The translations under genes and the position numbers were made by a program. Below, in pieces: positions 16 to 56,094 of a stretch of 64,000 nucleotides of DNA; positions within the stretch are counted from its first letter, which is position 1, and each line of letters opens with the position of its first letter. The stretch is taken from the NCBI GenBank assembly GCA_001643675.2, contig LSRY02000045.1, forward strand, positions 744,001-808,000, given 5' to 3'. The notes below the pieces were generated by a model. It had not been told where the DNA came from and ran no database searches. It was given only the letters and a program-made list of their open reading frames with translations. Source of the stretch: Monocercomonoides exilis PA203. Its lineage: Eukaryota; Protista; Preaxostyla.

Positions 16-3000
16 GTGAATGGGAATGGAGGGGGGATAAAGGTTGAGTTGGAAGCGCCTTCAAGCAAAACTCGGATTGGAACATCAACATCGCACAGCG
101 GAGGAACAACAAAATTCAACAAAACGAAGTGCAGTGGATATGGAGGAGGGGTGATGCTATGGCTAGCAGATAATTCATTTGATTTTGCGATATCATCAGT
201 GAGTTTTGTTGGTTGCAGTGCAACATCGGGAGGGAAAGATGTGTTTGTGAATGGGAGCAGGTTGGTGAGTGGAACAATAACAACCACAAAGCTGAATTTC
301 TCACAAAATGTTTCTATTTATGATGAGCTGATGGGATATGACCGGAATGAGGGAGAGATGGGAATATTCACATTGAATGTGTTTTTGGATGCATTTTCAG
401 GAGCAGCACATGTGGGGAAAGCGGTGAATGGGAATGGAGGATATGACTGGTGGTTTTGTGGGTTTGGTTATTTTCCATGCAAAACGATCGCGTTTGCTTC
501 ACAGAACAGATTCAGTTCGTTAAAGAAGAATATTGCGTTGGATTCAGGGTTTGAGCTGGGAGAAGTTGTGTCGATGGCAGGGTCATATGAATGGGAGGTG
601 TATTGTGGGATTAACAAGACGAATGTGAATGTGAGAGTGCCGAGTGGAATGACATCTTCGTGTTTGATAAATGTTGAGAGTGCAAGCTCCATTAAGAACA
701 TTGGGTTCCAAATTCCATTTTCGTTATCGAGTGCAACATCACTCATTGGTTTGACCAGCTCATCACTCACACTCACAGACTGCTCAGTTGCTCATTCATC
801 AGAGAGCACATCGAGTGTAGCCTTTGGATACAGCATTGTGAATGCGCAGAGTGGGAGTCTGAAAATGGAACGATTTGTGATTGGTGGAGAACTTGTGTTT
901 GGAGCTCATTCAGCGATTGAATTTTCTGAAGGAATGGCGAGTGTGATTTGTTCAGGATGCAATGTCAGTGGAGTCAAAAGGAATGAGGGAGATGGAGGAT
1001 GGATGAAGGGGACAGTTGGAGGGAGTGGAACGTTGACAATTGATGGATGCAATGTGAATGGGTGCAGTTGTGTTGGTGGAAAAGGAGGAGGAATATATGT
1101 TGGATTGAAGGGAAATGGGAAAGCGGTTGTGAATGGGACGAGTGTGATTGATGGGAATAAGGCAGAGAATAATGGAGGGAGAGGAGGGAGAGGAGGAGGG
1201 ATGTTTGTATTGATGGAGAGTGGAGGATGTGGATTGACAATTGGGCAGAATGTTGAGTTTTCGAAAGTGAATGGGAATGTGGCCTCATATGGGAAGGATG
1301 TGTTTGTTGATTGTGGGAGTGGAGTGTTTTTGGAGTCAAAAGTGAATACCAGTTCATTTGCATTTTTTGACACAAACACCATTCCATCAGATGTATTGAA
1401 ACTGAGTGGGAGTGAAAATGGGAAAGAAAGTGGAGTGATTCCACTGCTTGTGTATTTGTGCACAATGGGAACAAAAGGGATTGTTGATGGGAGTGGAGGA
1501 AATGGGAAGGACCACAACCATTGTGGATTTGAGGCATTCAGGTGTTTGACAGTTGATTATTGTGCGAACTCAAGATTGAGTGAAAGTTCAAAAGAAATAG
1601 AAGTTGTTTCATCTTCGTCAATAACCAAGGAAATCACAGTACCATCATTTGGTGTGATAATTTCAGGCAGAATAACATCATCATCAGAAGGAGAGAGGAT
1701 GGGAGTGAATGTGAGTGATGGAGGATCAGACACACAAGATTGGCTTGTTGGATGTTCGAGTTCACTGACAATGAGGAGACTTTCATTTGTTGTGAAAGGT
1801 CAGTTGAATCCAAGGAGAAGTGCATTCATTCATTCAACATCATCAACACTCAGTGTGACGAATTGTTCAGTCTCATTTGAGAGTGGGGCATTGACTGATG
1901 GAAAGATAGGATACAGCATCATTGACATGACAGGAGGGAATCTGATTGTTGATGGATTTGTGATGGAAAGTGGAGTGACACTGACAATGAATGGGAAATC
2001 ACCAATAACGATGACAGGTGGAGTGAAAATGGAGATTTTGAATAGCAGAATGAGTGGAGTGGAAGTGGAAGTTGCAGGTGGAAATGGAGGAGGATGTTTG
2101 AATGTAGGGATGGGGGATAATGGGAATGTGAAAATTGAAGAAAGCAATTTTTCATCAAGATGCTCAGGTGGAAGTGGAATGAAAGGAGGGGGGATGATGA
2201 TATCAGTTGGAAGCGGAGGAACATTGAGGGTGAAAGGAGTGAAATTATCGGGATGTGAAGTGCCATCAGAGGATGTTGAGAATGGAGGGAGAGGAATGGG
2301 AGGAGGGATGTTTGTTGAACTTGCCAATCAAATGGGAACATTTTCATTGGAGAGCATGGCATTTGAAGGATGTGAGGCATGGAAAGGGAAGAATTTGTTT
2401 GTGGAAGCGCAGGATTTATCTGCTGTCATCAACAGCACTTCAATTGGATTCAATCCAGTGATTGAAGTGAATGTTGCAGACTTGAATGAATTTTTTGGAC
2501 GAGAAAGAGACAAGCCAGAGCTGATTGTTCCACTTGTTGTGTTTCTTCGAACATTTTCATCACCAGGATATGTGAGTGGGAGAAAACAAGGAAGTGAATT
2601 CAGGCTGTGTGGATATGAAGATTACCCATGCAGGACAATTGGGAATGTTGGAGAAGTTCAGTTTCCGAGTTCAAAGAGAGTGATCAGATTGACAAACACA
2701 TTTTCATTTGATGAAGAAGCTCAGTTGAATGAACAGTCATATGAGATTGATTCGAGCAACAAAGACGTTGGAATAAAAATCGAGGCAACAGGAACAAAAA
2801 CACAAGAAGCGTTGGTGATGAACAGTGTTTCATCAACATTGGCAGGGATACTGTTTGAATTGGGAGAATCGATTGGAGATCGATCATCATTTGTTCATTC
2901 GACAAGTGGCACATTGAAATTTGCTGATTGTGGGATAAAGATGGGAAATGGAGTGGATGCAGTGAGTTATGAGTTTGTGAGTGCAAGTGGAGGGACATTA

Positions 3001-6000
3001 TCCATTTCAGGTTTTAGTATGACTCATGTGAAATTTGGAATGAATGCATTCATTGTTGTTGATGGAAATGGGGGTGCTTCGATTAGGGATTCGTTGCTTG
3101 AGAGTGTGGAAACAACAAATATGAAGGGATTGATTGAGTATTCATCGTCATCAAGTTCATTGTCGATCGGGAATGTGACAGCACAAGAATGTGTGATGGG
3201 AGGGAAAGGACTGATATGGGATGATAATGGAAAGAAGCTGGGGATGAGGAATTGCACGATTATGAAAATGAGCAGTTTGGAGGGAAATGGGAGTGTTGTG
3301 TGTGGAGAAGTTGGGGATGGATGTGCTGTTGAGGTGAATGAAGTTGTGATTGAAGGATGTGGAACATTGAAGGGATGTGGAGGAGGGATGGCAGTGATCT
3401 TGAAGGGAACAGGAGAAATGTGTTTGGGAAAGAGTGGAGTGGTGACATCGTTTGAGAAATGTTCAGCTGGTGGTGAGGAATCAGTTGGGGGATATGGGGG
3501 AGGAGTGAATTTGGATTTGAGTGACAATTGTGTGAATAATTTTTTACTTTCAACATTGACATTCAAAGAGAATGTTGCTGCTGAGGGAAGGGATTTGTTT
3601 ATTTCGTGCAAGAAACTGAATGAAACAGTGACGAAGGAGAGGTTTGGATTTGAATACAAATATGAAAATGGAGAAGGAGAAGGAGAAGGAGAAGGTCAGG
3701 CAGTTGACATGAAAGGGATTGACAGAGACCATTTTGCAGAGAATGTTGATCTTGAGCTGTTTCTTGTTGAAATGAAGGGAATGGAGGTGTGTGTGTCGAA
3801 GGAGGGGTATGACACATTGGGATGTGGGAGCGATGGACATCCGTGTGAATCGATGTGGAGTGGAATAAGTCACATTGACAAAAGTGGGACAGAAGGAGAA
3901 AGGACAGTGAAAGTGAGGGATGAAGGGACAATTGAAGATGTTTATTCATTCACAGATGCACTTGTGATTGATGGATGTGTGAATGAAGGAGATGAAACCA
4001 AACACAAGCCCGTTCATTTTGAAGGGACAATCAAAGAGAATTCAGCATTTGCTTCATCTGTTATTTCATCAACAGTATCACTCAGCTTGTTATCATTGAA
4101 ATTGCAGATTCCAAGTCAATTTGAGCCAAATATGAATACACTGATCTCATCGAGTGGGGTTCTTCAACTCGAAAGCTGCATGTTTGAGATCCGATCATCA
4201 ACAGATATTGTTCAATACTCATTAATATCCACAACAAGTGGAAGTTGCACATTGAAGGGATGCAGTTTAAAAGGGTCTTCATTCGCCAAATCACCATTGT
4301 TATTAGCTTCTTCTGTTTTGCTTGAAAACAGCAACTTTTCAAACATTGAGAATACTGGAAGCGGTGAAGGAGGTGTTGCAAGAGTGACATTAAAAAATGA
4401 CGAAAATTTGATCATTAATTCAACAAATGCATCATTTTGCTCACTTTCATCAGGCAACGGAAAAGGAGGATTTCTTTATTTGGATTGCCAAAATTGTTTG
4501 AATGAGAGGCCATTTGTTTTTGATGCTGACGTAACTTTTAAGAATAACAATGCAGCCATTGGAAAGAATGTGTTCGTTTTGGGAAAGGATTTTAATTCTT
4601 CTGTGACAAATGACTCATTCAACTTCGATTATTCCTCAATGATAAATGATAAAACTCTGTTTGTTGGAAGTGATGATTTTCATCATGAAAAGGATTTATT
4701 CATGTTCCTCATTCCATACAGCTCATTTGAGATATTTATCTCATCGAGTGGATTTGATGTGGCACGTTGCGGAAGCGAGGAAGAGCCATGCTTCACAATG
4801 TGGAAAGGGATGGAAAACATGAAAGATGAAGAAGGAAATAAAACCATTCAAATTGAAGGATCAACTGTTATTCGAGATTCATTCAACATGTCCAATTATC
4901 TGATAAAAAAGGATGCTAAGATGGGAGAAGAGAATGTGAAAGCCAAATTGAATTTTGAAAAGGCAGTTGGAAGTCAACTGGAATATTTCATGGTGAATAA
5001 TATTCATTTTGAATTGACAAATATCCAACTCCAACTATCATCTGGATTTGACAACTCAGCCAAAACAATTATTTCAAACAGAGCTGACGAGTTGGTGATA
5101 AGTGGATGTGCATTCCATTCAGCAGCAGGAGTGAACAATGGATTTGATTGTGTATTTGTGGATGCGATCGGAGGCAGTGTGGAAGTGAATGATTTGTCAA
5201 TGGAATCGTGCAATGTTGGAAACAGTATTTTTGTCATTCACGATGCTGGAATTACTTGCCATTTTGTGAATGTTCAAGTGGAATCGTTGAATGAAAGCAG
5301 AGAATGTCTTCTTCTGATCAATGGAACTGAATTAACAACAAAGTTAAATGAAGAATATGTAAATATCGAGATTGATAATTCGTCATTTTCAGGAGTGAAG
5401 AGAAGTGACAATGGAGCAAGCATTTTGGAATCAAAGAGTGAGAATAAGATTTGTTTGGTTGTGAATTCGAGCAACATCACAGAAGACAAAGCAGAAATGA
5501 GTGAAAAAGGAGGGGCGATATTCTTCACATTGGGTGCATCTGGATCAATGAAGACGATTGACTCAAATATTTGCTATTGCAGCTGCAGTATTTGTTCAGG
5601 GAAAGGAGGAGGGGTGTATCTGGCAACAAAGGAAAGAGGAGAATTGAAATTCACATTTGTGGGGATGAAGTTCAATTCAAACACAGCAAGAGTGGGGAAT
5701 GACATTTTCATTGAATGTTTCAACATCACATCTCAGATCAATGAAAGTCAATTTCAGTTTGATCTTCGAGAGAATCATTACTCACGAATTAATGCAATAT
5801 TTGGAAGAGATGAATGCATTTACACATATGACATTAATCTGATTGGATTTGTGACTATCCATCAGAGTGACACAATTGTTGTGAGCAGTGCGGTTGGATC
5901 GAATGACAGACAATGTGGAACAAACACACTTCCTTGTGATTCAATTGAACGGGGTCTGATTCACTTGACATCGGAGCTGATAAGTCAAATACTCATTGTT

Positions 6001-8671
6001 GAAGAGAGTGTGATTGGAGAAGAAATAAATCTGAAGGAAATGAGTCTGAATTCGAAGAGCAGAGATTTTTGTGAAGTTGAAGTGAAATCTGGGATTGAAA
6101 AAACAAAGGATTCTTTGGTTTCAACAAGAGAAACAGTCTCATTGGTGAGAGTGAATTTTGTATTTGATTCGTATTTCATCTCTTCACATGAATCACTGAT
6201 ATCACCAGAGAGAGGTATTCTTGAAGTGATGAATTGCTCTTTTTCATCAAAACAATCAGTGGAAGGTGAAAATGCTGAATTTGCAAATATACCATTTCAC
6301 ATTATAAACATGAAAAAAGGAGAATTACAACTTGATGGATGCTCAATATCAAATCTCATTCTTCATAAATCTTCAATATATCTATCATCATCACTTCCAT
6401 CAGTGATTTATTTGTTTGAGATATTCAATTCAACAATAAAAACATCTCTGATAGATATTAATGAATGTGGACAATTAAACATGGAAAAGTTTCATTCAGA
6501 AAATATCACAGTTGAGGGAAATGAAGAATCATTGATATCTTGCTTGTCAATGAAAACGACAATTCAATTTTCAAATTGCACAATTGGTGGGGTCAGTTCA
6601 AACACCGCAAAAGGAAAATTGATGAAATTGGAGAATTGCACAGATGTGAAAATGGACAGTTGCGTTTTTGATGGGAGTTCAAAGAAAAGAAATGAGAAGA
6701 ATTTGAATGAAGGGGAAGAGATGTGCAGATGGTCAGGATCTCTTGTGGATGTTGTGAAGAGTTTTGTGGTGATGAAAGACACAACAATCTGGAATTCACC
6801 AGAAGGTGGAATCACTATGGGTGGAGGAAATGTGAATATTGAGATGGGGTTATTTGAGAACAACAATCCTTTCATTGAAAAATATCCATCATTGAGAAGA
6901 AACATCATCTGTTCAGATTCAGGAACATTGAATGTGATGAGTTTGAAAGGAGGAGATGGATGGAAGGATAACACGTCTTTTTGGATGTTGAATGAAGGGT
7001 GCAGTTTTGAGGGGATTGTTTCTGAGAGAGATTCATCATTCTTCATTCCTATTCTGGAGAGTGTGGAAGCAAAAGAAGAGGAAAATAGAATGAAGCTGAT
7101 ATTCAAAGGAATGCTTCTTGTTCCATGCAATCTGTCATTTTCAGTTGTGAAGAAGAAGGGAGAAGAGAAAGAGATTGAAAAACATGATTTTGATTCAAAT
7201 GGATTCTTATCGGAAAGAGAAGCAGAAGGAAGTGTTGGAAAGGATCTAATCAGCAATTGTGGAGATGAAATCGAAGTGAGCGTGCATATTTTGTTTGGAA
7301 AAGCAGAATCTCCATCATCAACTCGGTCATTCATTCTGAAGAATGCAAGCGAAGCAAAGACAAATGGAGATGAAAGAATTGTTGAAGGAGGAAAAGAGGG
7401 GAAATCTTATTGGATTATCATTGTTGTTGTGTTGATTGTGATATTATTGGTTGTTCTGATTGTATCTATTGTTGCGACCATCCGCTGGAGAAAAGCAAAG
7501 AAAGAGAACAAAGATTTGAGAGAGATTGTGAATGATAACATCAGAAAGGATCCGAAGGCGTTTGAGATGGTGACGATGGAGATGTCACCAGAGGCGCAGC
7601 GGAGGAGAGAAGAGAAGGAGAATGAAGAGAATGCAAAGAAGAGGGTGTTTGTGAAAACAATGGTGCATTCGGAGTCAGAAGAGTGTTTGCTGAGTGAGAG
7701 TGGATCGACAGAATATATTCTTGGAAAGGATTCAGATGAGATTCCTGATTGGGCATTGGAGGAAGTGGATGAGAAGGAGATGGAGGAAGAAGAGATAAGG
7801 AAGAGATCACTATCACCATCTATTTCATCCACAGGCACAGAAACCACATTTGTGCAAATTGAAGATGTGAGTCCAACAACCTCATCGATGTCGAATCTGG
7901 TGGATGCAATTGCCTGTTCAACTCCACATGAGAAGCTGATTGTGGATCTGAGGGATTCGCTGTTCATGCTGTTGCATGGGCTGAACAAGACAAAGGAGAT
8001 GGCGATAGGCACATTGAAGGAAAGAGAGCAGACAGCAGCAGAAGTGCTGCTGCTGGTGGCGAATCTGGCGCTCCACTCGTTTGACGAGATGGAAGTTCAG
8101 CTTTCGTCTCTGGAGAATCTGAGTCCGCACATTGTTCTGTTTTCGGAGCACATGGTGATCTGCATTGCACTCCACTCGGACTGTTCGTCAGATGATGACT
8201 CAGATTCTTCATCCACCTCTTCATCAACTGTTGTAACATCTGAAAGTGATGATGATGATGATGATGATAGTGACTCTCTTCCCTCATCAGCATTTGAGGA
8301 TGAGCCCGACAACTGGAATGAGTGTTTGAGATGGAAGGCGCCAGAGCTGCAGATGAAGAGGAAGATGGGAGCAACGAAGGAGTCGGTTGTGTTTTCGATG
8401 GGGATGATGCTGTGGGAGATTCTGAGTTTGCAGATTCCGTTTGGGGAGTATTCAGCAGAGGTGGCAGGATGGAAGATAAAAGAAGGGGAGCTGCCGAGCA
8501 TGTATTTGGTTGAGGGATCGTCATTGGGAGGGATTGTGCGCTGTTGCACATCGCGGGATGCAGCAGAGCGGATGGGTTTGGCAGATCTGAAGCGAGAGTT
8601 CGTTCGACACATTCCTGCAGGAGCCATGATAATGACGATTTCGGATGCGATTATCGAGGAAGGGGGAACAT

Positions 8672-8709
<38 letters not shown>

Positions 8710-37756: not shown

Positions 37757-37789
<33 letters not shown>

Positions 37790-38097: not shown

Positions 38098-38129
<32 letters not shown>

Positions 38130-39513: not shown

Positions 39514-39544
<31 letters not shown>

Positions 39545-40029
39545 TTTCTTCTTCCTCTTCTCTTCCTTCTCCTCCTCTTCCTTCTTCTTCATTTCCTTCT
39601 TCTTCTCTTTCTTTTCCTTCTTCTTCTTCTTCTTCTTCTTCTTCTTCTTCTTCTTCCTTCCAATCAATCTTCATTCAACCATCCATCTTCCCTACAAACA
39701 CAAAACCTTCTTCTATTTTGTCTGCGTCTCAACATTTCATCCACACAAGCAAGACAAATTCTGTCTCTTCTTCTGCTTCTAATCCTTTTTCGCCTTCACA
39801 AACAATTTATTCTTCTTCTCCTTCTTCCTCTTCCTCTTCTTTTTCTCCTTCTCCTTCTTTTTCTTCTTCTTCTCTTTCTTTTCCTTCCTCTTCCTCTTCC
39901 TCTTCTTTTTATACAAATTCTCCTCCTTCTTCTTCTGCAATGAAGACAATCGTCTCATCATCTCCTTCATCATCATCACAATCACAATCACAATCACCAT
40001 TTTCTCCTCCTCCTTCTTCTTCTTCCTCC

Positions 40030-40062
<33 letters not shown>

Positions 40063-43409: not shown

Positions 43410-44850
43410 TGAAAAAATCCTGAGAATCTAATTTCTACGTGTTTCTCCGAAAATGGATAATGTTTTTATCTTTATTGCATATATCAAAAATTTGTGATAA
43501 GCTCCTTTTGTGTAATTTTCAGAATAAAATGAAAACTGAACATTTTCTTCATATTTTCAATCCAACTCACTGAATTCAACAGCATGGGAAAACAAGCTTG
43601 ACAATGCAATAATAAACATTCTTGTGAAGTTTAGTAAGTGGAAACAAAATATTTATCGAAAAATGAAAATTTTATTTTGCATGATATTTAAACAAAAGGA
43701 AGTTTTCAAAAAAAAAATATCAATGTGTTATTTTTTTCAGAAAAGAAAAAATGATTTCTGCAATTCATGTATTGCTTTTCATAATTAATTCGATGTCATT
43801 TTCTTTATCGTGTTAGATTCATTTGCCTATCCATCAGAATAAAGCAAGATATTTGTGAGTGAATATCCTTTTCGCAACATATTGTCCTTGCTCAATATCA
43901 TTGAACAGTGTTGTTATTCATTTGTATTGAAATGTCAAAAATCTCAATAAAAAACTATTTTTTTCTTTGGAAAAATAACAAGCACATCATCGATCACCTT
44001 TTTCAACAATGAATTACAGCGTCTCGCTTCGGTCATCAATCTTTCTTCAACAATTTATTTTATCTTCAAAAAAAAATCAGTTGCCTAAAGTGGAGATTTG
44101 AAGAACATTGATCATTCAGGAATGAAAAATGTAACGAGAGATAAAACCTTCACCATTTATCATCCTGTTCGAAGAGCGTTTCATAAAGATGACTGCATAA
44201 AGGATGGAGGAAAATTGAGGTTTGAAAAGTTTCAATTTCAAAGAGATTTCAAACACAATGATTTCAAATTAACCATTCACATTTCTTGTTTTGATCTCTT
44301 TTATTCATTCCCAATAACATTCCTTTGAAATGACTAAATAACTAAAAAAGAAAAGAAAAGAAAACACGTATATCTTCTTTGTTGTGAAGAAGACCAAACA
44401 GAAGCTCCAAAAATGATGAAAAGATAAATATTGCAAAAGTATATCACAGCACAGCCAAATACATACACACACCAATACATACAAATACATACTAATATAT
44501 ACTGATATGTGCGCCAACTGTTCACTGGCACATACCAGAGGCTTCAAATGTTCCATTGGAGAGAGAATGGAAAAATGAATGTGAATGAAAGACAAATGCA
44601 AATGCAAATCAAACACTTCAAACAGAAAACAGAAAACAAAAAACGAAAGAATAATTCCATTCAATAAAAATATCACTCACTCACATACAACCCAACAAAA
44701 ACAACAAAAATTGCAAACACGTTTCACTCCACTTGATCTTTTATCCGTCCATCTCCAATTCAACTGCCTCCATTTCCATCGTTCAAACCCTCCAACTCTT
44801 CGTCTTTTTCTCTCCTTTTCCTTTTCATTTCGTTTGTATCAATCGTCCAT

Positions 44851-47800
44851 TCATGCCATCCCTCTCTCTTCCCCTTTCAAATAGCTGCTCGGCACAATCT
44901 CATCCCCGCTTTTGTCTCGCCTGATCACCGACCCATCCACCAGGCAAAGCGCATCCGATGCTGTCACCATCATCGCCCCTGGCCCGCACCCCGCCGCCAG
45001 CTCTCGCCTCAGCTCCCCCAGCCCACACCGGTCTCCAGGCGCACACACCACACACCCCTTCACAACCCCGCCAAATGACGACCCCGCCACCTTCTCCATC
45101 TCCGGCCTCTCCCCATTCACAATCTTCTGCCCTGCCACCTCTGCCGGATACTCCCCAAACGGAATCTCCACCGTCAGAATCTCCCACAGCATCATCCCCA
45201 TCGAAAACACAACCGACTCCTTCGTTGCCCCTATCTTCCTCTTCATCTGTAGCTCTGGCGCCTTCCATCTCAAACAATCATTCCAGTTGTCGGGCTCATC
45301 CTTAAATGCTGATGAGGGCAGAGAGTCACTATCATCATCATCATCACTGGCAGATGTCACATCTGTTGATGAAGAAATGGATGATGAGTCTGAGTCATCA
45401 TCTGACGAGCAGTCTGAGTGGAGTGCAATGCAGATCACCATGTGCTCCGAAAACAGAACAATGTGCGGACTCAGATTCTCCAGAGACGAAAGCGGAACTT
45501 CCATCTCGTCAAACGAGTGGAGCGCCAAATTCGCCACCAGCAGCAGCACTTCTGCTGCTGTCTGCTCTCTTTCCTTCAATGTGCCTATCGCCATCTCCTT
45601 TGTTTTATTCCTCCCATGAAGCAGCATGAACAGCGAATCCCTCAAATCCACAATCAGCTTCTCATGTGGTGATGAGCAGGCAATTGCATCCACCAGATTC
45701 GATATCGATGAGGTGGTCGGACACAGATCGTCCATCCTCACAAATGTTGTGTTTGTGTCTGTGGATGAGATGGATGGTGATGGTGTTCTCTTCCTTATCT
45801 CTTCTTCTTCTTCTATCTCCAGTGCCCATTCAGGAATCTTGTCTGAATCCTTTCCAAGAATATATTCAGTGGAGCCACTCTCAGCCAACAAATACTCTTC
45901 TGACTCCGAATGCACCATCTTCTTTTCATACACCCTCTTCTTTGCATTCTCTTCATTCTTCTTCTCTTCTCTCCTCCATTGCGCCTCTGGTGACATCTCC
46001 ATCGTTACCATCTCAAATGCCTTCGGATCCTTCTTGATGTTATCATCAACAATCTCTTTGTATTTTTTCGCTTCTTCTTTTTCCTTTCTCCATCGAACAG
46101 CCAAAACAATAGATACAATCAGAACAATAAGCAGAATTACAACAAGCACAATCACAATCAACAACCAATAAGATTTTCCTTCTTTTCCTCCTTCAGCAAT
46201 CCTTTCATCCCCATTTGTCTTTGCTTCACTTGCATTCTTCAGAATAAATGAATTTGTTGATGAAGGATAATCATTAACTCCGAATAAAATGAGCACACTC
46301 ACCTCAATATCATCTCCGCAGCTGCTGACGAGATCTTTCTCCACATTTCCTTCTGCTTCTCTTTCTGATAATAGCCCATTTCTATCAAAATCGTGTTTTT
46401 CAATCTCTTTCTCTTCTCCCTTCTTCTTCACAACTGAGAATGACAAATTGCATGGAATAAGAAGCATTCCTTTGAATATCAATTTCATTCTATCTGTCTC
46501 TTCTTTTGCTTCCACACTCTCCAGAACAGGAATGAAGAATGATGAATCCCTCTCTGAAGCAATCCCTTCAAAACTGCACCCATCATTCAACATCCAAAGA
46601 GATGTATTTCTTTCCCATCCATCTCCTCCTTTCAGACACACAACATTCAATGTTCCTGAATCTGAGCAAATGATATTCCTTCTCAGCGATGGATATCCTT
46701 CAATTGATGGATTATTGTTTTCAAATCTTCCATCATTAACGATCAATGCCCCTCCATTTATTGTTATTCCACCTTCTGGTGAATTCGAGATTGTTGAATC
46801 CTTCATCATCACAGAACTCTTCGCAACATCCACAAGAGATCCTTCCCATCTGCACATCTCTTCTTCTGTATTTAAATATTGTTCGTTTCTTTCATTTGAA
46901 CTCCCATCGAAAATGCAACTGTCCATTTTCACATCCAAACAATTCCCCAGCTTTATCAACTTCCCTTTTGTTTTGTTTGAACTGACTCTGCCCATTGTGC
47001 AATTTGTCAATTGCATCGTCTTTTTCATTGACAGGCAACATATCAATGATTCTTCATTTCCTTCAACTGTGATATTTTCTGTTTTGAAATCCTTGATTGT
47101 CAATTGCCCGTATTCATAAACATCTATCAGAGATTTTGAAATTGTTGAATTGCAAATCGTTAATGAATCGATGACTGATGCAAGTGATGATAATAGAGAT
47201 AATGAAGATTCATGAAGAATGAGATTTGATATCTTGCATTCCATGAGTTGTAATTCTCCTTTTTCCATTTTTATAATGAGAAATGGAATGTTTGCTAATT
47301 CTATACTTCCTTCTCCAGCCGATTGTTTTGAGTCAAATGAGCAATTTATTATCTCAAGAATCCCTCCCTCTGGTGATATCAATGATTCGTGTGAAGAGAT
47401 GAAATTTGAATCAAACACAAAATTCACTCTCACCAACGAGACTGTTTCTCTTGTTGAAATCAAAGAATCCTTTGTTTTTTCAATTCTTGATTTCACTTCA
47501 ACTTTACAATTTTCTCTGCTCTTCGAACTCAGACTCATCTCCTCCAGATTTATTTCTCTTCCAATCACACTCTCAGTGTCAACATACAATAGACTCACAT
47601 ATTCAGATGTCAGATGCATCAGTCCATGCTCAATTGAATCACATGGAAGAGCATTTGTTCCACATTGTCTGTCATTCGAACCATTCACACTGCTCACAAC
47701 AATTGTGTCACTCTGATGGATAGTCACAAATTCAATAAGATCTGTATCTTCTTTGTGCTCACAACTATCAATTCCATATATAGCATTAATTCGTGAATAA

Positions 47801-50800
47801 TGATTCTCTCGAAGATCAAACTGGAATTGGCTTTCATTGATCTGGGATGGGATGTTGAAGCATTCAATGAAAATATCATTCCCCACTCTTGCTGTGTTTG
47901 AACTGAATTTCATTCCCGTAAATGTGAAATCAAGAAACCCTCTTTCCTTTGTTGCCAGATACACCCCTCCTCCTTTTCCATTGGTGCAGCTGCATTGGCT
48001 GATTGTTGAGTCAATCATCTTCATCGATCCAGATACACCCAATGTGAAGAATATTGCCCCTCCTTTTTCACTCATTTCTGCTTTGTCTTCTGTGATGTTG
48101 CTCGAATTCACAGCCAAACAAATCCTTTTCTCACTCTTTGATTCCAAAATGTTTGGTCCATTGTCACTTCTCTTCACTCCTGAAAATGATGAATTATTAA
48201 TCTCAATATTTACACATTCTTCATTTATCTTAAATCCTTGTTCAGATTTCTTGATTGATAAAATGCATCCTCTGCTTTCATTCAACGATTCCACTCGAAT
48301 ATTCACAAAATGGCAAGTAATTCCAGCATCGTGAATGACAAAAATACTGTTTCCAACATTGCACGATTCAATCGACAAATCATTCACTTCCACACTTCCT
48401 CCAATCACATCCACGAATACACAATCAAATCCATTATTAACTCCTGCTTCTGAATGGAATGAACATCCAGTTATCACCAACTCACCAGCTCTGCTTGAAA
48501 TAATCGTTTTGGCTGAGTTGTCGAATCCCGATGTTAATCGGAGCTGGATATTCGTCAATTCAAGATGAATATCATTTTCCATGAAATATTCCGGTTGACT
48601 TCCTATTGACTTTTCAAAATTCAATATTGCTTTTGTATCTTCTTCTCCAATCTTTACACTTTTTTTGATCTGATAATTGGACACGTTGAATGAATCTCGA
48701 ATAAAAGTTGATCCTTCAATCTGAATTGTTTTATTTTCATCTTCATCTCTCATATTTTTCATCCCTTTCCACATTGTGAAGCATGGCTCTTCCTCACTTC
48801 CACAACGTGCAACATCAAATCCACTTGATGAGATAAATATCTCAAATGAGCTGAATGGAATGAGGAACATGAATAAATCTTTGCTTGAATGAAAATCATC
48901 ACTTCCCACAAACAAATTGTTATCATCCTTCATTGATGAGTAATCAAACTTGAATGACTCATTTATCACAGAAGAATTAAAATCCTTTCCCAAAATGAAC
49001 ACATTCTTTCCAATGGCTGCATTGTTGTTTGAAAATGAAACGTTTTCTAAAAGAAATGGCTTCTCATTCAAACAATTTTGGCAATCCAAATACAAGAATC
49101 CTCCTTTCCCATTGCCTGATGAAAGCGAACAAGATGATGCATTTGTCGATTTCATCACCAATTCTTCTTCATTTTTTAATGTAACTTTTGCAACGCCTCC
49201 TTCTTCACCACTTCCAGTGTTCCTAATGTTTGAAAAGTTGCTGTTTTCGAACAAAACAGAAGAAGCCATTACCAGTGGTGAAATGGAAAATGAACATTCT
49301 GTCAGACTGCATCCCTTCAATGTGCAACTTCCACTTATTGTGGATATCAATGAGTATTGAATGGCCGTTGATGATAAGATCTCAAATAAACAGCTTTCGA
49401 GTTGAAGAACCCCACTCGATGAGATCAGTGAATTCAAATTTGGCTCAAATTGACTTGGAATCTGCAATTTCAATGATAACAAGCTGAGTGAAACTGTTGA
49501 TGAAATAACAGATGAAGATGATGATGCAGAATTCCCTTTGATCCTTTCATTAAACTGAATAGGCTTGTGTTTGGTTTCATCTCCTTCATTCACACATCCA
49601 TCAATCACAAGTGCATCTGTGAATGAATAAACATCTTCAATTGTCCCTTCATCCTTCACTTTCACTTTCCTTTCTCCTTCTGTCTCACTTCTGTCAATGT
49701 GGCTTATTCCACTCCACATCGATTCGCATGGATATCCATCGCTCCCACATCCCAATGTGTCATACCCCTCCCTCGACACACACACCTCCCTTCCCTTCAT
49801 TTCAACAAGAAACAGCCGAAGATCAACACTCTCCGCAAAATGGTCTCTGTCAATCCCTTTCATATCAACTGCCATCCATTCACCTTCTCCTTTTCCATTT
49901 TCATATTTGTATTCAAATCCAAACCTCTCCTTCGTCACTGTTTCATTCAGTTTCTTGCAAGAAATGAACAAATCCCTTCCCTCAGCTGCAACATTGTCTT
50001 TGAACGTCAATGTTGTCAACACAAAGTTATTCACACAATTGTCACTCAAATCCAAATTCACTCCTCCCCCATATCCCCCAATTGATCCCTCACCTCCAGC
50101 TGAACATTTCTCAAACGATGTCACCACTCCACTCTTTCCCAAACGCATTTCTCCTGTTCCCTTCAATATCACTGCAATCCCTCCTCCACATCCCTTCAAT
50201 GTTCCACATCCTTCAATCACAACATCATTCACCTCAATAGCACATCCATTTCCAACTTCTCCACTCACAACACCCCCATTTCCCTCCAAACTGCTCATCT
50301 TCATAATCGTGCAATTCCTCATCCCCAGCTTCTTTCCATTTTCATCCCATATCAGTCCTTTTCCTCCCATCACACATTCTTGTGCTGTCACATTCCCAAT
50401 CGTCAATGAACTCGATGATGACGAATACTCAATCAATCCCTTCATATTTGTTGTTTCCACACTCTCAAGCAACGAATCCTCAATCGAAGCACCCCCATTT
50501 CCATTAATAACAATGAATGCCTTCATTCCAAATTTCACTTTTCTCTCACTCCCTCCACAACTCATCCGGATAATCTCCACATTCCCTCCACTTGCACTCG
50601 CAAACTCATAATTCACTGCATCCACTCCATTTCCCATCTTTATCCCACAATCAGCAAACCTCAATGTCCCTCCTGAAGAATGAACAAATGATGTATGTTC
50701 CCAAATCGATTCTCCCAATTCAAATAATATCCCTGTCAATGTTGATGAAACACTGTTCATCACCAATGCTTCTTGTGTTTTTGTTCCTGTTCCTCCAACT

Positions 50801-53800
50801 TTCAATCCAACATCTTTGTTGCTCGAATCAATCTCATATGACTCCTCATCCAACTTCACTTCTTCATCAAATGAAAATGTGCTTGTCAATCTGATCATTC
50901 TCTTTGAATTCGGATATCGATATTCACTCGCTTCTCCAATTCTTCTGCATGGATAATCTTCATATCCACACAGCCTGAATTCACTTCCTTGTCCTCTCCC
51001 ACTCACATATGCTGGTGATGAAAATGTCCGAAGAAACACAACAAGTGGAACAATAAGCTCTGGCTTGCCACTCTCTATTCCACAAAGTTCATTCAAGTCT
51101 GCAACATTTATTCCAATTTCTGGATTGAATCCAATTGAGGTGCTGTTGATGACAGCCGATAAATCCTGTGCTTCCACAAATAAATTCTTCCCTTTCCATG
51201 CATTGCACCCACTGAATGTCATGCTTTCCAATGAAAATGTTCCCATTTGATTGGCAACTTCAGCAAACATCCCTCCTCCCATTCCTCTCCCTCCATTCTC
51301 AACATCCTCTGATGGCACAACACATTCTGACAAATTCACTCCTTTCGCTCTCAATGTTCCTCCGCTTCCAACTGATATCATCATCCCTCCTCCTTTCATT
51401 CCACTTCCACCTGAACATCTTGATGAAAAATTGCTTTCTTCAATTTTCACATTCCCATTAACCCCCATCCCAACATTCAAACATCCCCCTCCTCCATTTC
51501 CACCTGCAACTTCCACATTCACCTCCACTCCACTCACTCTGCTATTCAAAATCTCCAATTGAACTCCATTTGTCATCGTTATTGGTGATTTCCCATTCAT
51601 TGTCAGTGTCCCTCCACTTTCCATCACAAATCCATCAACAATCAGATTCCCTCCTGCCATATCAATGATGCTGTATCCTATCTTTCCATCTGTCAATGCT
51701 CCACTCTCAAATGAGACTGAACAGTTCGTCATATTGAGTGTTGATGTTGAATGGATGAATGCACTTCTCCTTGCTTTCAACTGACCTTTCACAACAAATG
51801 AAAGTCTCCTCATTGTCAGTGAACTCGAACATCCAACAAGCCAATCTTGTGTGGCTGATCCTCCATCACTCACATTCACTTCCATCCTCTCTCCATCTGA
51901 TGACACTATTCTGCCTGAAATACTCACACCAAATGACGGTCCTGTTATTTCCTTGGCAATTGACGAAGATGAGACAACTTCTATTTCATTCACAGTGCTG
52001 CTCATTCTTGAGTTCGCACAATAATCAACTGTCAAGCACCTGAATGCCTCAAACCCACAATGGTTGTGGTCCATCCCATTTCCTCCACTCCCATCAACAA
52101 GCACTTTTGACCCCATTGTGCACAAATACACAAACAGTGGAATCACTTCACTTTCATTACCATTTTCACTCCCACTCAGTTTCAATACATCTGATGGAAT
52201 TGTGCTTGTGTCAAAAAATGAAAATGAGCTGGTATTCACTTTTGACTCCAAAAACACACCACTCCCACAATCAACAAACACATCCTTCCCATATTCTGCC
52301 ACATTCCCATGATCTTTCGAAAACTTCACATTCTGCCCAATTGTCAATCCACATCCCTCGCTCTCCATCAATACAAACATCCCTCCTCCTCTCCCTCCTC
52401 TCCCTCCATTATTCTCTGCCTTATTCCCATCAATCACACTTGTTCCACTCACAACCACATTCCCATTTCCCTTCAATCCAACATATATTCCTCCTCCTTT
52501 TCCACCAACACAACTGCACCCATTCACATTGCATCCATCAACTGTCAACGTTCCACTCGTTCCAACTGTTCCTTTCATCCATCCTCCATCTCCCTCATTC
52601 CTTTTGACTCCGCTGATATTGCATCCTGAACATATCACACTCGTCATTCCTTCACAAAATTCAATCGCTGAATGAGCTCCAAACACAAGTGCTCCACCAA
52701 TTACAAATCGTTCCATTTTCAGACTCCCACCATGCGCATTCACAATGCTGTATCCAAAGGCCACACTCGATGTGCTCTCTGATATATGAGCAACTGAGCA
52801 GTCTGTGAGTGTGAGTGATGAGCTGGTCAAAACAATGAGTGATGTTGCACTCGATAACGAAAATGGAATTTGGAACCCAATGTTCTTTATGGAACTTTTG
52901 CTCTCAACATTTATCAAACACGAAGATGTCATTCCACTCGGCACTCTCACATTCACATTCGTCTTGTTAACCCCACAATACACCTCCCATTCATATGACC
53001 CTGCCATCGACACAACCTCTCCCAACTCAAACCCTGAATCCAACACAATAATTTTATTTCCTGTTGCAAATCTTGTTTCAACTGCATGAGAGATGGTTTT
53101 ACATGGAAAATACCCAAACCCACAAAACCACGAGTCATATCCTCCATACCCATTCACCGCTTTCCCCACATGTGCTGCTCCTGAAAATGTGTCAAAAAAC
53201 ACATTCAATGGGAATATTCCCATCTCTCCCTCATTCCGGTCATATCCCATCAGCTCATCATAAATAGATGCATTGTGTCCAACATTCAGCTTTGCAGTTG
53301 TTATTGTCCCGCTCACCAGTCTGCTCCCATTCACAAACACATCCTTTCCTCCCAATGTTGCACTGCAACCAACAAAACTCACTGCTGATATCGCAAAATC
53401 AAATGAGTTATCTGCCAGCCACAGCATCACTCCTCCTCCACATCCACTGCACTTGCACTGTTTGAATGATGTTATCCCTCCACTGTGTGAAGTTGAATCT
53501 CCAATTCTAACTTGGCTTGTTGAAGAAGCCAACTCAACCTTTATCCCTCCGCCATTTCCATTCACACACTCACATCCTTCTATTGTTGTGTTCCACACAA
53601 AAAATGTCTCTCCCGCCATCACGCTTTTTGCCATCACCACACCATCACCTGTTGTCCGATTCACATTTCGAATTGTCACATTCGCTAAAACACTTTCTCC
53701 AGATGCCAATCCTGCTGATGATGGTTCTGCAAATAGTGATCGACTCATTTTCATATTTTTGATCTCAACGTCAATCATCTTCAGCTGCCTCAGCGCCACT

Positions 53801-56094
53801 TCAAACACAGATGCTGATTTAACACTCCCTCCTGGTGTCGAAGAGTCGATCACCACATCCTCCAGCGAAAGAGCCCCGCTCCCCAGTGACACCACAAACA
53901 CACTCGGCGATGGACTTCTCATCGAGTTGTGGTCGATCCCCACATGCCCCACCTCCAGTTGGCCAGAAGATATGCTAAACAGCGTTGTTGCAGGCGAAGA
54001 AAGTGCACTTGTCCCAATCACACTCACTGTCTTCCCTCTCCCAACAACAGAAATCGTCTTTTCCCCAACACTGATCGTCGCCCCTTCACTCACGTGCTTC
54101 CCACCCATCAACATGATTGTCGAGCTCATCCCCAAAGCACATGTCCATAACGCATGCCCCACTGTCTTGCAAGGTGCTGCCTCACTCATCCCACACAGAT
54201 TGCTCGCGTCACTTCCACTCACCACAACATACCGTTCCTTCATCCCTTCCTTCAGCCATCCCTTCTTTTCTGTATGTTGATTCACCCAATTGTTTCCGTT
54301 ATAATATTGGAGGCACACTCTCGTATCATTACTATTCGTTGTATAAGATTCGTAGAACGGGTTGTTCGATGAGAAGAAATTGTATCGATCTTCCAAATAC
54401 ACATCGAGGCCATATGGAGTAGAAGTGGTTGTGCATCTGCAATCGTGGAAGAAGAAGAAATAACAATAATGATTGTAACTTGGAGCTGTTGATTGATATG
54501 GCCTGAAATCCAATCCTCCGCCATATGACACTGCTGAGCACGAAATAAACTGGAGGCTCCTCATTTTGAATGCAGCTGGAACACCGTAGCAATACATCCC
54601 TCCACCACTTGAATGTGTAAGAGAGCACGTAGTGAATGAACACTCAAACACACAAGCACTCTCACCTTTTCCACTTTCTGCTCCAATACATGAAGATCCA
54701 GAAACATTAAAAGAATTAAGAAAAAGTCCTCCTCCATCATTTTTTCCGTTGCAGCTCTTAAATTCGCACCCATTGACCCTGACACACGAAGTAATCGAAT
54801 TTGCATACAATCCTCCGCCACCATAAGTTTGAGAAATACAAGCATTGAACGAATTGTTCTCAATCTTGATGGAATTTATTGAAACGCAAAAAATTCCTCC
54901 ACCAGCATAATATGCAGTGCAGTCGTTAAACAAACAAAATTTCACTGAAAGCGTTCCAGATCTTAGATTATACATGTAAATTGCTCCACCATTTGAAGTT
55001 CCATCTGAATAAGATCCACTTGTTCCAGTAGTTTTTGAGCCATTCCATACACACCAAGTGAATGAATTCGCCCCATTGTCTGCAATCTGCTGTCTCCCTG
55101 GTTTCGATGGATTCCCCTCACTCCCGCTGACTGCAACATTCTGAGACCGATAGCACCTGACAAACGAGGCGTTCGAGGCAGACAATGACGATGAGGGGCT
55201 GTTGAGTGAGGAGACAATTCCCCCATCATAAACATCCCACACTGATGAAAATGTGCATCCACTCATCAGAAATGATGTTTGGCTCTGCCCTTCACCCAGT
55301 TGTCTTGTTTTCTGTGGATTTGTGGAGATGTTGAAGAAGGTCAAATAAGAGAGGGATACAAAATGTGATGAGAGGAATGGAGCTGAAGATACACAAAAAG
55401 ATGAGAAATGAGAAGAACAAACAGAAATGTGGCATTTCTCTGAAATCTCTCCTTCCACTGTTTTTGAAGAGAAAAGTGGAGGAAATATCTGTTCAGTCGA
55501 GGTTGAAGTTGAAGTTGAAGACGATCTGAGGGAAATGTTGGTGAACAATCCACAGCTCCCACACAAATCAAAGGGGGGTCTCACTCTCTCAACTCCAATC
55601 ACACATCCACTCACCTCAACAGAACTTCCATCCGATGCCCTGAGCACACTCTCCCCACCCATTTCCCTCAATCCCAACAAATTCAGTTGAATTGATGAAT
55701 TGACCCCAACAACACTTCCCTCAACCCCACTCCCACCACACACACTCCCCTTTCCCCACATTTTCCACTCATCACAAAAACCCCATTTTTCAACTTTCCC
55801 AATCTCTCCACTTCTCCCATTCCACCGTTTTGTGCATTTCTTCATTGTTATCGCCTCTTTCCAGGTTTCTCTCGCTCCACCTTCTTTTCCTTCAACATAT
55901 GTGTCAAACAAATGGCCATCTCCAATTTTGTTGTTTTGAGCCTTCTCTCTCCATGTGCCTTCTGGATAATCCAATTCTCCTTCTTTCGCTGATTCCTCAA
56001 CAAATCCTGCTCCATCACTTGTGGAACCCTTGCACACACACCCCACACTAATTATCCACACACAATATAATATTCCTGACAGTCCAAATATCAT
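44851..56094 (-). CDS. Full-length giant receptor-like pseudokinase (paralogue of 16-8817)
   Basis: Intronless ~3750-aa ORF. ATG 56094 gives signal-like MIFGLSGILYCVWIISVGC. GGAI/GGG[ILM] and FxxC/FxxN repeats, seven CG-x4/5-[P/R]C modules, TM YWLLIVIVLVVILLIVLIVSIVLAV-RWRK, then RWKAPE, VFSMGMMLWEILTVEIPF and GERP. Confidence 0.9.
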   Translation of the reverse strand: MIFGLSGILYCVWIISVGCVCKGSTSDGAGFVEESAKEGELDYPEGTWREKAQNNKIGDGHLFDTYVEGKEGGARETWKEAITMKKCTKRWNGRSGEIGKVEKWGFCDEWKMWGKGSVCGGSGVEGSVVGVNSSIQLNLLGLREMGGESVLRASDGSSVEVSGCVIGVERVRPPFDLCGSCGLFTNISLRSSSTSTSTSTEQIFPPLFSSKTVEGEISEKCHISVCSSHFSSFCVSSAPFLSSHFVSLSYLTFFNISTNPQKTRQLGEGQSQTSFLMSGCTFSSVWDVYDGGIVSSLNSPSSSLSASNASFVRCYRSQNVAVSGSEGNPSKPGRQQIADNGANSFTWCVWNGSKTTGTSGSYSDGTSNGGAIYMYNLRSGTLSVKFCLFNDCTAYYAGGGIFCVSINSIKIENNSFNACISQTYGGGGLYANSITSCVRVNGCEFKSCNGKNDGGGLFLNSFNVSGSSCIGAESGKGESACVFECSFTTCSLTHSSGGGMYCYGVPAAFKMRSLQFISCSAVSYGGGLDFRPYQSTAPSYNHYCYFFFFHDCRCTTTSTPYGLDVYLEDRYNFFSSNNPFYESYTTNSNDTRVCLQYYNGNNWVNQHTEKKGWLKEGMKERYVVVSGSDASNLCGMSEAAPCKTVGHALWTCALGMSSTIMLMGGKHVSEGATISVGEKTISVVGRGKTVSVIGTSALSSPATTLFSISSGQLEVGHVGIDHNSMRSPSPSVFVVSLGSGALSLEDVVIDSSTPGGSVKSASVFEVALRQLKMIDVEIKNMKMSRSLFAEPSSAGLASGESVLANVTIRNVNRTTGDGVVMAKSVMAGETFFVWNTTIEGCECVNGNGGGIKVELASSTSQVRIGDSTSHSGGITSFKQCKCSGCGGGVMLWLADNSFDFAISAVSFVGCSATLGGKDVFVNGSRLVSGTITTAKLNVGHNASIYDELMGYDRNEGEMGIFPLNVFFDTFSGAAHVGKAVNGYGGYDSWFCGFGYFPCKTISHAVETRFATGNKIIVLDSGFELGEVVSMAGSYEWEVYCGVNKTNVNVRVPSGMTSSCLINVESKSSIKNIGFQIPFSLSSATSLIVLTSSSLTLTDCSVAHISESTSSVAFGYSIVNAHGGSLKMERFVIGGALVFGAHSAIEFCEGMTSVICSGCNISGVKRNEGDGGWMKGTVGTSGTLTVDGCNVNGCSCVGGKGGGIYVGLKGNGNVVVSGTSVIDGNKAENNGGRGGRGGGMFVLMESEGCGLTIGQNVKFSKDHGNVAEYGKDVFVDCGSGVFLESKVNTSSFSFFDTSTIPSDVLKLSGSENGNESEVIPLFVYLCTMGSKVLVDGSGGNGMDHNHCGFEAFRCLTVDYCANSRMSSTVNEIEVVSSSSIAKEITGPSFGVSISGRIVSSDGERMEVNVSDGGSATQDWLVGCSSSLTMRRLSFVVKGQLKARRSAFIHSTSTLNMTNCSVSFESGALTDGKIGYSIIDMAGGNLIVDGFVMESGGTLTMNGKSPITMTNGVQLEILNSRVSGVEVNVEVAGGNGGGGCLNVGMGVNGNVKIEESNFSSRCSGGSGMKGGGMMISVGSGGTLRAKGVNLSECVVPSEDVENGGRGMGGGMFAEVANQMGTFSLESMTFSGCNAWKGKNLFVEAQDLSAVINSTSIGFNPEIGINVADLNELCGIESGKPELIVPLVVFLRTFSSPAYVSGRGQGSEFRLCGYEDYPCRRIGEASEYRYPNSKRMIRLTSTFSFDEEVKLDEESYEIDSSNKDVGLKVGGTGTKTQEALVMNSVSSTLTGILFELGESIWEHTSFVHSSGGTLRFADCGIKMGNGVDAVNYEFASASGGNVEIIRMSCGGSERKVKFGMKAFIVINGNGGASIEDSLLESVETTNMKGLIEYSSSSSSLTIGNVTAQECVMGGKGLIWDENGKKLGMRNCTIMKMSSLEGNGGVVSGEVGNGCAIEVNDVVIEGCGTLKGCGGGIAVILKGTGEMRLGKSGVVTSFEKCSAGGEGSIGGYGGGVNLDLSDNCVNNFVLTTLTFKDNVAAEGRDLFISCKKLNETVTKERFGFEYKYENGKGEGEWMAVDMKGIDRDHFAESVDLRLFLVEMKGREVCVSREGYDTLGCGSDGYPCESMWSGISHIDRSETEGERKVKVKDEGTIEDVYSFTDALVIDGCVNEGDETKHKPIQFNERIKGNSASSSSSVISSTVSLSLLSLKLQIPSQFEPNLNSLISSSGVLQLESCLFEILSSTAIQYSLISTISGSCTLKGCSLTECSFSISPLVMASSVLFENSNFSNIRNTGSGEEGGVAKVTLKNEEELVMKSTNASSCSLSSGNGKGGFLYLDCQNCLNEKPFLLENVSFSNNNAAIGKNVFILGKDFNSSVINESFKFDYSSMKDDNNLFVGSDDFHSSKDLFMFLIPFSSFEIFISSSGFDVARCGSEEEPCFTMWKGMKNMRDEDENKTIQIEGSTFIRDSFNVSNYQIKKSVKIGEEDTKAILNFEKSIGSQPEYFMENDIHLELTNIQLRLTSGFDNSAKTIISSRAGELVITGCSFHSEAGVNNGFDCVFVDVIGGSVEVNDLSIESCNVGNSIFVIHDAGITCHFVNIRVESLNESRGCILSIKKSEQGFKINEECVNIEINNSSFSGVKRSDNGPNILESKSEKRICLAVNSSNITEDKAEMSEKGGAIFFTLGVSGSMKMIDSTISQCSCTNGKGGGVYLATKERGFLDFTFTGMKFSSNTARVGNDIFIECFNIPSQINESQFQFDLRENHYSRINAIYGIDSCEHKEDTDLIEFVTIHQSDTIVVSSVNGSNDRQCGTNALPCDSIEHGLMHLTSEYVSLLYVDTESVIGREINLEEMSLSSKSRENCKVEVKSRIEKTKDSLISTRETVSLVRVNFVFDSNFISSHESLISPEGGILEIINCSFDSKQSAGEGSIELANIPFLIIKMEKGELQLMECKISNLILHESSLSLLSSLASVIDSLTICNSTISKSLIDVYEYGQLTIKDFKTENITVEGNEESLICCLSMKKTMQLTNCTMGRVSSNKTKGKLIKLGNCLDVKMDSCIFDGSSNERNEQYLNTEEEMCRWEGSLVDVAKSSVMMKDSTISNSPEGGITINGGALIVNDGRFENNNPSIEGYPSLRRNIICSDSGTLNVVCLKGGDGWERNTSLWMLNDGCSFEGIASERDSSFFIPVLESVEAKEETDRMKLIFKGMLLIPCNLSFSVVKKKGEEKEIEKHDFDRNGLLSEREAEGNVEKDLVSSCGDDIEVSVLILFGVNDYPSSTNSFILKNASEAKTNGDERIAEGGKEGKSYWLLIVIVLVVILLIVLIVSIVLAVRWRKEKEEAKKYKEIVDDNIKKDPKAFEMVTMEMSPEAQWRREEKKNEENAKKRVYEKKMVHSESEEYLLAESGSTEYILGKDSDKIPEWALEIEEEEEIRKRTPSPSISSTDTNTTFVRMDDLCPTTSSISNLVDAIACSSPHEKLIVDLRDSLFMLLHGRNKTKEMAIGTLKEREQTAAEVLLLVANLALHSFDEMEVPLSSLENLSPHIVLFSEHMVICIALHSDCSSDDDSDSSSISSSTDVTSASDDDDDSDSLPSSAFKDEPDNWNDCLRWKAPELQMKRKIGATKESVVFSMGMMLWEILTVEIPFGEYPAEVAGQKIVNGERPEMEKVAGSSFGGVVKGCVVCAPGDRCGLGELRRELAAGCGPGAMMVTASDALCLVDGSVIRRDKSGDEIVPSSYLKGEERGMA

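Follow-up and report, generated by a model that had tools for sequence, protein, structure and literature searches.

A 64,000-nucleotide stretch of the genome of Monocercomonoides exilis PA203 (hereafter, the window; positions 744001-808000 of contig C42 in an assembly of 82.3 Mb and 101 contigs) carries two giant genes, designated A and B, that belong to a single multigene family. Their protein products, P0002 and P0001, both begin with a hydrophobic signal-like peptide and continue as a long ectodomain of serial modules, followed by a single transmembrane (TM) helix and a degenerate kinase-like cytoplasmic tail. The features of the two genes are collected in Table 1. Comparison of A and B with each other and with their many relatives elsewhere in the genome suggests that these genes are members of a receptor-like family with beta-helix ectodomains and pseudokinase tails, and that the family evolves by duplication and by ectopic gene conversion that leaves its members as mosaics.

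Table 1. Features of genes A and B (window positions, with strand)
Feature	Gene A	Gene B	Remarks
Gene A	16..8817(+)		Open reading frame; 3' 2933 codons of the 3773-aa protein P0002; codons 1-840 upstream of the window
Gene B		44851..56094(-)	Complete single-exon gene, 3747 aa (P0001); signal-like peptide, predicted beta-helix ectodomain, TM helix, pseudokinase tail
CG-x4-[PR]C motifs (six)	457..5937(+); starts ~457, 1522, 2608, 3823, 4768, 5914		315-405 aa apart; each opens one predicted beta-helix module
Patch P1	487..531(+)	53050-53094(-)	Nucleotide identity 0.49; allele classes AFASQNRF, TKAAENRF, SHAVETRF/THAAQVRY
Patch P2	1576..1593(+)	51988-52005(-)	Nucleotide identity 0.44; classes LSESSK, MSSTVN (~22 and ~21 proteins)
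Patch P3	2634..2670(+)	50908-50944(-)	Nucleotide identity 0.59; classes GNVGEVQFPS, GEASEYRYP
Patch P4	2995..3027(+)	50539-50576(-)	Nucleotide identity 0.50; classes TLSISGFSMTH, NVEIIRMSCGGSERK; 7+5 nt indels apart
Patch P5	5977..6003(+)	47575-47601(-)	Nucleotide identity 0.37; classes ELISQILIVE, EYVSLLYVDT, DFMSQM-type
Further patches	5296-5358, 5794-5850, 6454-6501, 6808-6861(+)		Motif-blind scan; found without reference to the motif
Candidate conversion tract (212 nt), B side		approx. 50420..50624(-)	100% identical to paralogue L032 (C42:627864); pair 90.5% identical overall; spans P4
TM helix	7411..7482(+)	about 46096-46167(-)	One per protein
Kinase C-lobe remnant	8320..8598(+)	about 44998-45279(-)	Pfam PF07714 profile positions 166-257 only (A)

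A sequence-only reading of this DNA had placed the open reading frames (ORFs) of A and B at these locations, and both are found there; the ORF of gene B spans 44851-56130(-), with the ATG at 56094 as its likely start. The full-length product of gene A was recovered as a database protein and mapped onto the window with an offset of 840 amino acids (aa). The colinearity ascribed to the two genes is evident from a single BLASTN alignment that extends over 8563 nucleotides (nt). The accompanying description of A and B as nearly identical over long stretches is overstated, since they share 87.5% identity in DNA and 80.6% in protein, and even the best 150-nt windows reach only 96-97%. Nor are A and B a special sister pair: B is about the 10th-best match to the head of A and does not appear among the 40 matches scored for the tail half of A. 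They are two ordinary members of the largest M. exilis gene family. The sense strand of both genes is markedly G-rich, and coding-strand GC skew is very strong (+0.27 to +0.50 at window positions 1-8000, and -0.30 to -0.42 at 44000-56000, where the gene lies on the other strand).

A word-based protein search with gene B as the query returns 353 proteins at E<=1e-10, and all 120 of the 120 matches listed are M. exilis proteins (MONOS_*); candidate DNA matches in the genome number 371-1278. The genome thus holds many paralogues rather than a few, as the sequence-only reading had supposed. In the published record, "protein tyrosine kinases" are the largest M. exilis gene family, with 332 predicted members of which 320 are tyrosine-kinase-like (TKL) (Karnkowska et al. 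2019, PMC6759080), and the tyrosine-kinase-like genes overlap 28.9 Mb of "unclassified repeats" (Treitli et al. 2021, PMC8767320). The TKL expansion and the family of A and B comprise the same genes: the homologues listed are MONOS_* proteins, most of them with a match to PF07714. In the passages searched, these two papers count and classify the genes as kinases only, and those passages contain no description of a beta-helix ectodomain, of the loss of catalytic motifs, or of mosaic evolution by conversion. The family is already on record, and its architecture, pseudokinase nature, and mosaic evolution appear to be undescribed in the passages searched of these papers.

Paralogous segments retain open frames over 3.3-4.5 kb in most cases (13 of 15 and 28 of 31), and the gene is real and under constraint. 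Module number varies among paralogues (e.g., about 2.2 kb of extra sequence lies between the head and tail matches of the copies at C42:298-375 kb). Close relatives of A's head are found mostly on contigs C41 and C42, which are of similar size (821,271 bp and 810,774 bp) and carry most of the closest relatives of both A and B. Three copies on C42 (L035-L037, also sampled as L005, L006, and L018; 298391-301679, 314637-317927, and 370936-374225(-)) are 99-100% identical over the N-terminal 3.3 kb and lie, two in direct and one in inverted orientation, within 75 kb; identity this high at such short range indicates recent segmental duplication. Some segments of these copies lack a stop-free frame (22-61 stops in the best frame) and are either pseudogenes or the product of homopolymer errors. 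Many other genomic matches consist of the head only and share end-points at A query positions ~2387 and ~2980; more than 15 copies end at one or the other (e.g., C80:1923314-1925698, four copies on C58, three on C31, and four on C2). One head-only copy, at 92% identity, is nearer to A than is any full-length paralogue. Carriage of the family as cargo of a transposable element was considered and rejected: homology between paralogues stops within the coding region near A nt 8478, the flanks are not shared, and the other ORFs of the window are unrelated.

The modules of the ectodomain are predicted to adopt a right-handed parallel beta-helix (pectin-lyase-like) fold. An AlphaFold2 model of residues 960-2080 of P0002, based on 54 family sequences (21-88% identity), has a mean predicted local distance difference test score (pLDDT) of 85 and is all-beta, with short periodic strands. 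The top Foldseek matches in the PDB are right-handed beta-helix proteins (e.g., GH55 glucanases, PL6 lyases, phage tailspikes, and pectin methylesterases), of which the best is weak (E=5.6e-4); global TM-scores are low because the query contains three modules. Rung motifs of the GGxI/GGG type occur in the modules. Language-model neighbours at 0.93-0.94 carry DUF1565 (PF07602), Chlam_PMP (PF02415), and Beta_helix (PF13229) domains. A Pfam search of each ectodomain module gives no match even at E<=1, and the modules are therefore not members of PF07602 or PF02415; the relation to DUF1565 and Chlam_PMP is one of resemblance. In the model, P1 (after motif 1) and P3 (module 3) lie on a short cap helix and loop, P2 occupies the loop that follows the module 2 cap helix, and P4 spans beta-strands and a turn within module 3. 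P5 coincides with the strand that first follows the cap helix in the last module, as placed in a low-confidence part of a second AlphaFold2 model (last module, TM helix, and tail; pLDDT 53) that served for secondary-structure hints only.

Conservation in the family is highest in the cytoplasmic tail, where many columns are invariant across 66 sequences. Pfam profile PF07714 matches the tails of A and B at 26.8 and 29.2 bits, above its cutoff of 23.1, and in 10 of 10 tails the alignment is confined to profile positions ~160-258, which make up the C-lobe. Among 65 tails, the HRD and VAIK-like motifs occur in none, a DFG-like motif in one, and GxGxxG in four, and APE is present in all 65. A complete catalytic kinase domain (glycine-rich loop, VAIK lysine, HRD aspartate, and DFG aspartate) was not found in the tails compared. 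The N-lobe sheet is absent from the AlphaFold2 model of the tail, which is of low confidence, and the best sequence match in the PDB is the pseudokinase ILK, over the C-lobe only. Because it retains only the C-lobe of a TKL kinase, the tail is a pseudokinase, the term that the sequence-only reading had already used for it. The "largest kinase family" of M. exilis therefore looks, from its sequences, like a family of pseudokinase-tailed receptors or adhesins.

Divergence between A and B is strongly uneven along the alignment. The five patches first proposed (P1-P5) are all present, and their coordinates in gene B agree with the proposal to within one base. Their edges are sharp, with 37-59% nucleotide identity inside and roughly 90-95% in the flanks. 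The differences between the two genes are clustered: the variance of windowed mismatch counts lies 10-12 standard deviations above permutation, at synonymous as well as non-synonymous codons, a pattern at odds with uniform divergence. A scan that is blind to the motif recovers at least nine internal low-identity patches, in addition to a C-terminus that cannot be aligned. The proposal that patches sit just after the CG-x4-[P/R]C motif holds for four of the five original patches and for only two of the nine in the unbiased set (P=0.08). Across a 34-member alignment, the windows of 16 residues that follow each motif rank between the 53rd and 70th percentiles of column entropy, and P4 alone among the original patches is in the top 5%. 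In an unbiased scan, then, patches show no significant tendency to follow the motif, and the family as a whole is not hypervariable at post-motif positions.

An 11-nt core (GGA[C/G]ATTATCC) is common to the two alleles of P4 and falls in a different frame in each, with a 7-nt and a 5-nt insertion or deletion (indel) on its two sides, which hints that this allele pair arose by compensated frameshift. Such a frameshift is a possible partial cause of P4. As a source of P1, P2, P3, and P5 it was rejected, their alleles being of equal length, in frame, and only 37-59% identical in DNA.

Evidence for exchange of the patches comes from DNA data sets covering the N-terminal 3.3 kb (L031-L043) and the C-terminal 4.5 kb (L001-L030) of paralogues, together with 154 database proteins. 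Among 15 N-terminal paralogous segments, P1-P4 each occur as two or three discrete multi-residue alleles, and these are combined in various ways: the allele strings for P1 through P4 are a-a-a-a in A, b-b-b-b in B, a-b-a-a in L033, a-b-a-b in L035, and c-a-a-b in L041. In L032 the string is a-a'-a-b, where a' (MSENSK) is a variant of a, and in L043 it is a-a-b with P4 uncovered. Mixed combinations are also seen for five patches in 31 C-terminal segments and across 120 proteins. All four combinations of A-like and B-like alleles occur in 28 of 45 patch pairs, and there is no convincing association between patches (smallest Fisher p=0.046, uncorrected over 45 tests). The P1 allele of B, unique in the first sample, is also present at three further sites in the genome, of which two are head-only copies on C58. 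Patch alleles thus recur in other paralogues with different flanks, as gene conversion among paralogues, one of the two explanations offered by the sequence-only reading, would lead one to expect.

Recombination is also apparent from formal tests. The pairwise homoplasy index (PHI) departs far from its permutation mean in both the N-terminal data set (z=-16.4, 584 informative sites) and the C-terminal one (z=-13.0), with p<0.002, and the compatibility of sites is raised only within about 30 nt. Of four consecutive segments of ~965 nt, each rejects the maximum-likelihood (ML) trees of the other three (differences in log-likelihood of 285-1107; approximately unbiased (AU) test, p<=6e-4), and the trees of different parts of the gene are therefore incongruent. 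The nearest paralogue to A switches every 150-300 nt. Perfectly identical runs of 100-484 nt are present in pairs of paralogues that are only 80-92% identical overall, and such runs exceed the Bonferroni threshold of a uniform-divergence model in 16 of 102 and 30 of 462 pairs. Some of the exchange is therefore recent. Gene B has identical runs of 212 nt with L032 (across P4), 209 nt with L035-L037, and 128 nt with L008 and L013 (across the patch at 5794-5850). The first of these is a candidate for a recent conversion tract (Table 1).

Mosaic structure and significant recombination, with tracts shared between members whose flanks are discordant, are thus properties of this family, and the sequence comparisons give good support to ectopic gene conversion that pervades a set of at least 350 giant paralogues. 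With a probability of about 0.8, the window is best read as a sample of a giant beta-helix pseudokinase receptor-like family that is a mosaic produced by duplication and ectopic conversion. Under this interpretation, the members are intronless type-I membrane proteins of 2000-4300 aa, laid out as a signal peptide, serial right-handed beta-helix modules of ~360 aa (DUF1565/Pmp-like, with the CG-x4-PC cap motif first), one TM helix, and a pseudokinase tail. Duplication is accompanied by the copying of short tracts (tens to a few hundred nt) from one full-length gene to another, with truncated head-only copies as probable further donors, so that every gene is a fine-grained mosaic. At the variable patches, two or three block alleles of deep divergence are in circulation and are pasted into flanks that are otherwise homogenised. 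The proteins probably lie at the cell surface and may act in binding of ligands or particles, as adhesins or receptors with scaffold-type signalling, in which case reshuffling of the blocks could yield useful binding diversity.

Several observations weigh against this interpretation. RNA-library unitigs match A at 97% identity or more in 22-23 of 30 bins, and none do so in 2816-3815. The long-range phasing of the patches rests on the assembly, with read contigs of only 74-136 nt. The test of identical runs assumes uniform divergence, and some of the long runs could be conserved stretches. At 10-20% divergence, part of the incompatibility among sites is homoplasy.

The second explanation in the sequence-only reading, strong positional diversifying selection, is not supported by the behaviour of synonymous sites. 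Overall, A and B differ at a proportion of 0.241 of synonymous (pS) and 0.100 of non-synonymous (pN) sites, with a ratio (omega) of 0.37. Across 100-codon windows pS ranges from 0.07 to 0.58, and in 50-codon windows it tracks pN (Spearman 0.78). The five patches pooled have pS=0.69 and pN=0.47, vs 0.165 and 0.064 in the 30-codon flanks, and corrected omega is ~0.4 in both; choosing patches by amino-acid difference biases pN upward. Within the family, the ratio of non-synonymous to synonymous diversity (piN/piS) is 0.42 for the head and 0.31 for the tail half, and selection is purifying overall. Positive selection on exposed variable regions was not found in these comparisons, which count differences pairwise and are not recombination-aware. 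Because pS in the patches is high as well as pN, the patches are old or imported blocks rather than sites of rapid positive selection; on the sequence evidence, they are blocks of much older coalescence or blocks derived from more distant subfamilies.

Selection could still maintain the diversity in another way. If the patches were ligand-contact surfaces, balancing or diversifying selection might hold the alleles while conversion homogenises the flanks, and the deep divergence of the blocks would be adaptive. The original patches rank with the windows of highest piN across paralogues, with a piN/piS of 1.06 at P4; the model places P1-P3 on the cap helix and loop at module starts; and discrete allele classes with low within-class variation are the expected product of balancing selection with recombination. 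Against this stand an omega in the patches that equals the background and a patch pS that is saturated. In addition, the most variable windows in the C-terminal data are the TM helix and juxtamembrane segment, not ectodomain loops, and variability after the motif is ordinary across the family, with no significant association in the unbiased scan. Selection of this kind is an unlikely explanation of the patches.

A more doubtful alternative is programmed diversification, somatic or evolutionary, in a manner resembling antigenic variation, by which arrays of head-only cassettes would form a donor archive for short tracts copied into a few expressed full-length receptor-pseudokinase genes (cf. 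VSG mosaics, vls, and avian immunoglobulin (Ig) genes). The common end-points of the many head-only matches to A would suit such an archive, as would 34 short annotated head-only proteins that carry the same patch alleles and the recurrence of B's rare P1 allele in the two copies on C58. However, open frames and conservation of the tail are maintained in hundreds of full-length genes, as would suit a repertoire whose members can be used simultaneously. The RNA evidence consists of bulk Logan unitigs of 74-136 nt; loose ends of these unitigs carry alternative alleles of P2 and of the patch at 5794-5850, and family members of both classes are therefore present in the RNA libraries, a result that is silent on single cells. 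The organism is also regarded as a commensal (PMC6759080), and the tests made on these data lend no support to antigenic variation. If such an archive were real, it would provide a combinatorial surface-binding repertoire in a commensal, mitochondrion-less eukaryote, a beta-helix analogue of VSG mosaics or of Ig gene conversion; the analogy with antigenic variation is a possible one for the family of A and B.

It is very unlikely that the mosaic is an artefact of assembly or polishing, in which short reads applied to a family of more than 350 members would have pasted patches from the wrong paralogues. The decay of linkage at about 30 nt is near the scale of short reads or k-mers. At A positions 890, 3301, and 3342, all DNA contigs placed there differ from the letter in the assembly, and an RNA contig also differs at 890; these may be residual assembly errors or cross-mapping of paralogues. 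Yet a protein found only in the EukProt listing (P0005) matches the translated sequence of L032 at 100% identity across 1102 aa, combination of patches included; its source is presumably an older 454-based proteome. Many family proteins are one identical sequence in NCBI and EukProt, and branch-free DNA unitigs match A exactly across patch edges (e.g., 492-565). Trees are incongruent at the 1-kb scale, and open frames and omega<1 are retained, results that speak against an artefact. Plain divergence without exchange, with weakly constrained loops mutating faster after one duplication, accords with the position of some patches in loops or turns and can be set aside almost entirely, given that synonymous sites are equally affected, that other paralogues carry the identical multi-residue alleles in every combination, that PHI and AU tests reject a single tree, and that B is only about the tenth-closest relative of A.

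Two other long ORFs lie between A and B. The first, at window positions 13171-15237(+), encodes 688 aa with a Phage_integrase (tyrosine recombinase) domain (E=1.2e-8) and may be a Crypton- or DIRS-like mobile element. The second, at 33916-40449(+), encodes 2177 aa of mostly low-complexity poly-Ser/Pro sequence; it has no Pfam hit and is unrelated to the receptor family by BLASTP.

About one third of the M. exilis genome has been reported as "unclassified repeats" overlapping "tyrosine kinases", and the present analysis indicates the nature and evolution of these genes. On this evidence, the functional label moves from kinase to pseudokinase receptor or adhesin, and the family becomes a large natural data set on tract length and donor choice in ectopic conversion. 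It also carries a warning for annotation and population genomics, as family trees and dN/dS are meaningless unless recombination is modelled.

Among described systems, the closest analogue in architecture and evolutionary mode is the enigmatic DGF-1 family of Trypanosoma cruzi, of which the M. exilis family would be a metamonad counterpart. Like the proteins described here, DGF-1 proteins are very large (~3400 aa), with a signal peptide, tandem right-handed beta-helix modules (seven), and a C-terminal membrane region. Both families have tens to hundreds of copies plus fragments, and DGF-1 (mean nucleotide identity of 88%) has likewise been shaped by duplication, recombination, and gene conversion and contains variable regions that are localised. 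In contrast to A and B, DGF-1 has a "hat" domain and 7-9 TM helices without a kinase-like tail, and it belongs to Discoba rather than Metamonada. A and B are not members of DGF-1: each combines an N-terminal region and six modules defined by the motif with only one TM helix and a kinase-like tail. The resemblance may reflect convergence or very deep ancestry.

Other families share one part of the architecture or one feature of the evolution. Surface proteins of the DUF1565, Chlamydia Pmp, and PbH1 types have in common with the M. exilis family predicted right-handed beta-helix modules with GGxI/GGG-type rungs, whereas the M. exilis modules lack a significant Pfam match, occur in series in a eukaryotic protein, and are joined to a TM helix and pseudokinase. 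The EhTMKs of Entamoeba histolytica (PMC2880585) are, similarly, a large type-I receptor-like family in which a variable ectodomain is joined through one TM helix to a kinase or pseudokinase tail. Near-identical and truncated copies are numerous, and the family has been discussed in connection with antigenic variation. Unlike A and B, the EhTMKs have cysteine-rich ectodomains of CXXC repeats, mostly retain a full kinase domain, and are about 3-4 times smaller. Merozoite surface proteins of Plasmodium falciparum (PMC10919680) resemble the M. exilis family in having discrete, deeply diverged block alleles within similar flanks, with conversion between paralogues. The dimorphism of P. falciparum concerns alleles of a few loci in a population, whereas the blocks of M. 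exilis circulate among hundreds of paralogues within one genome.

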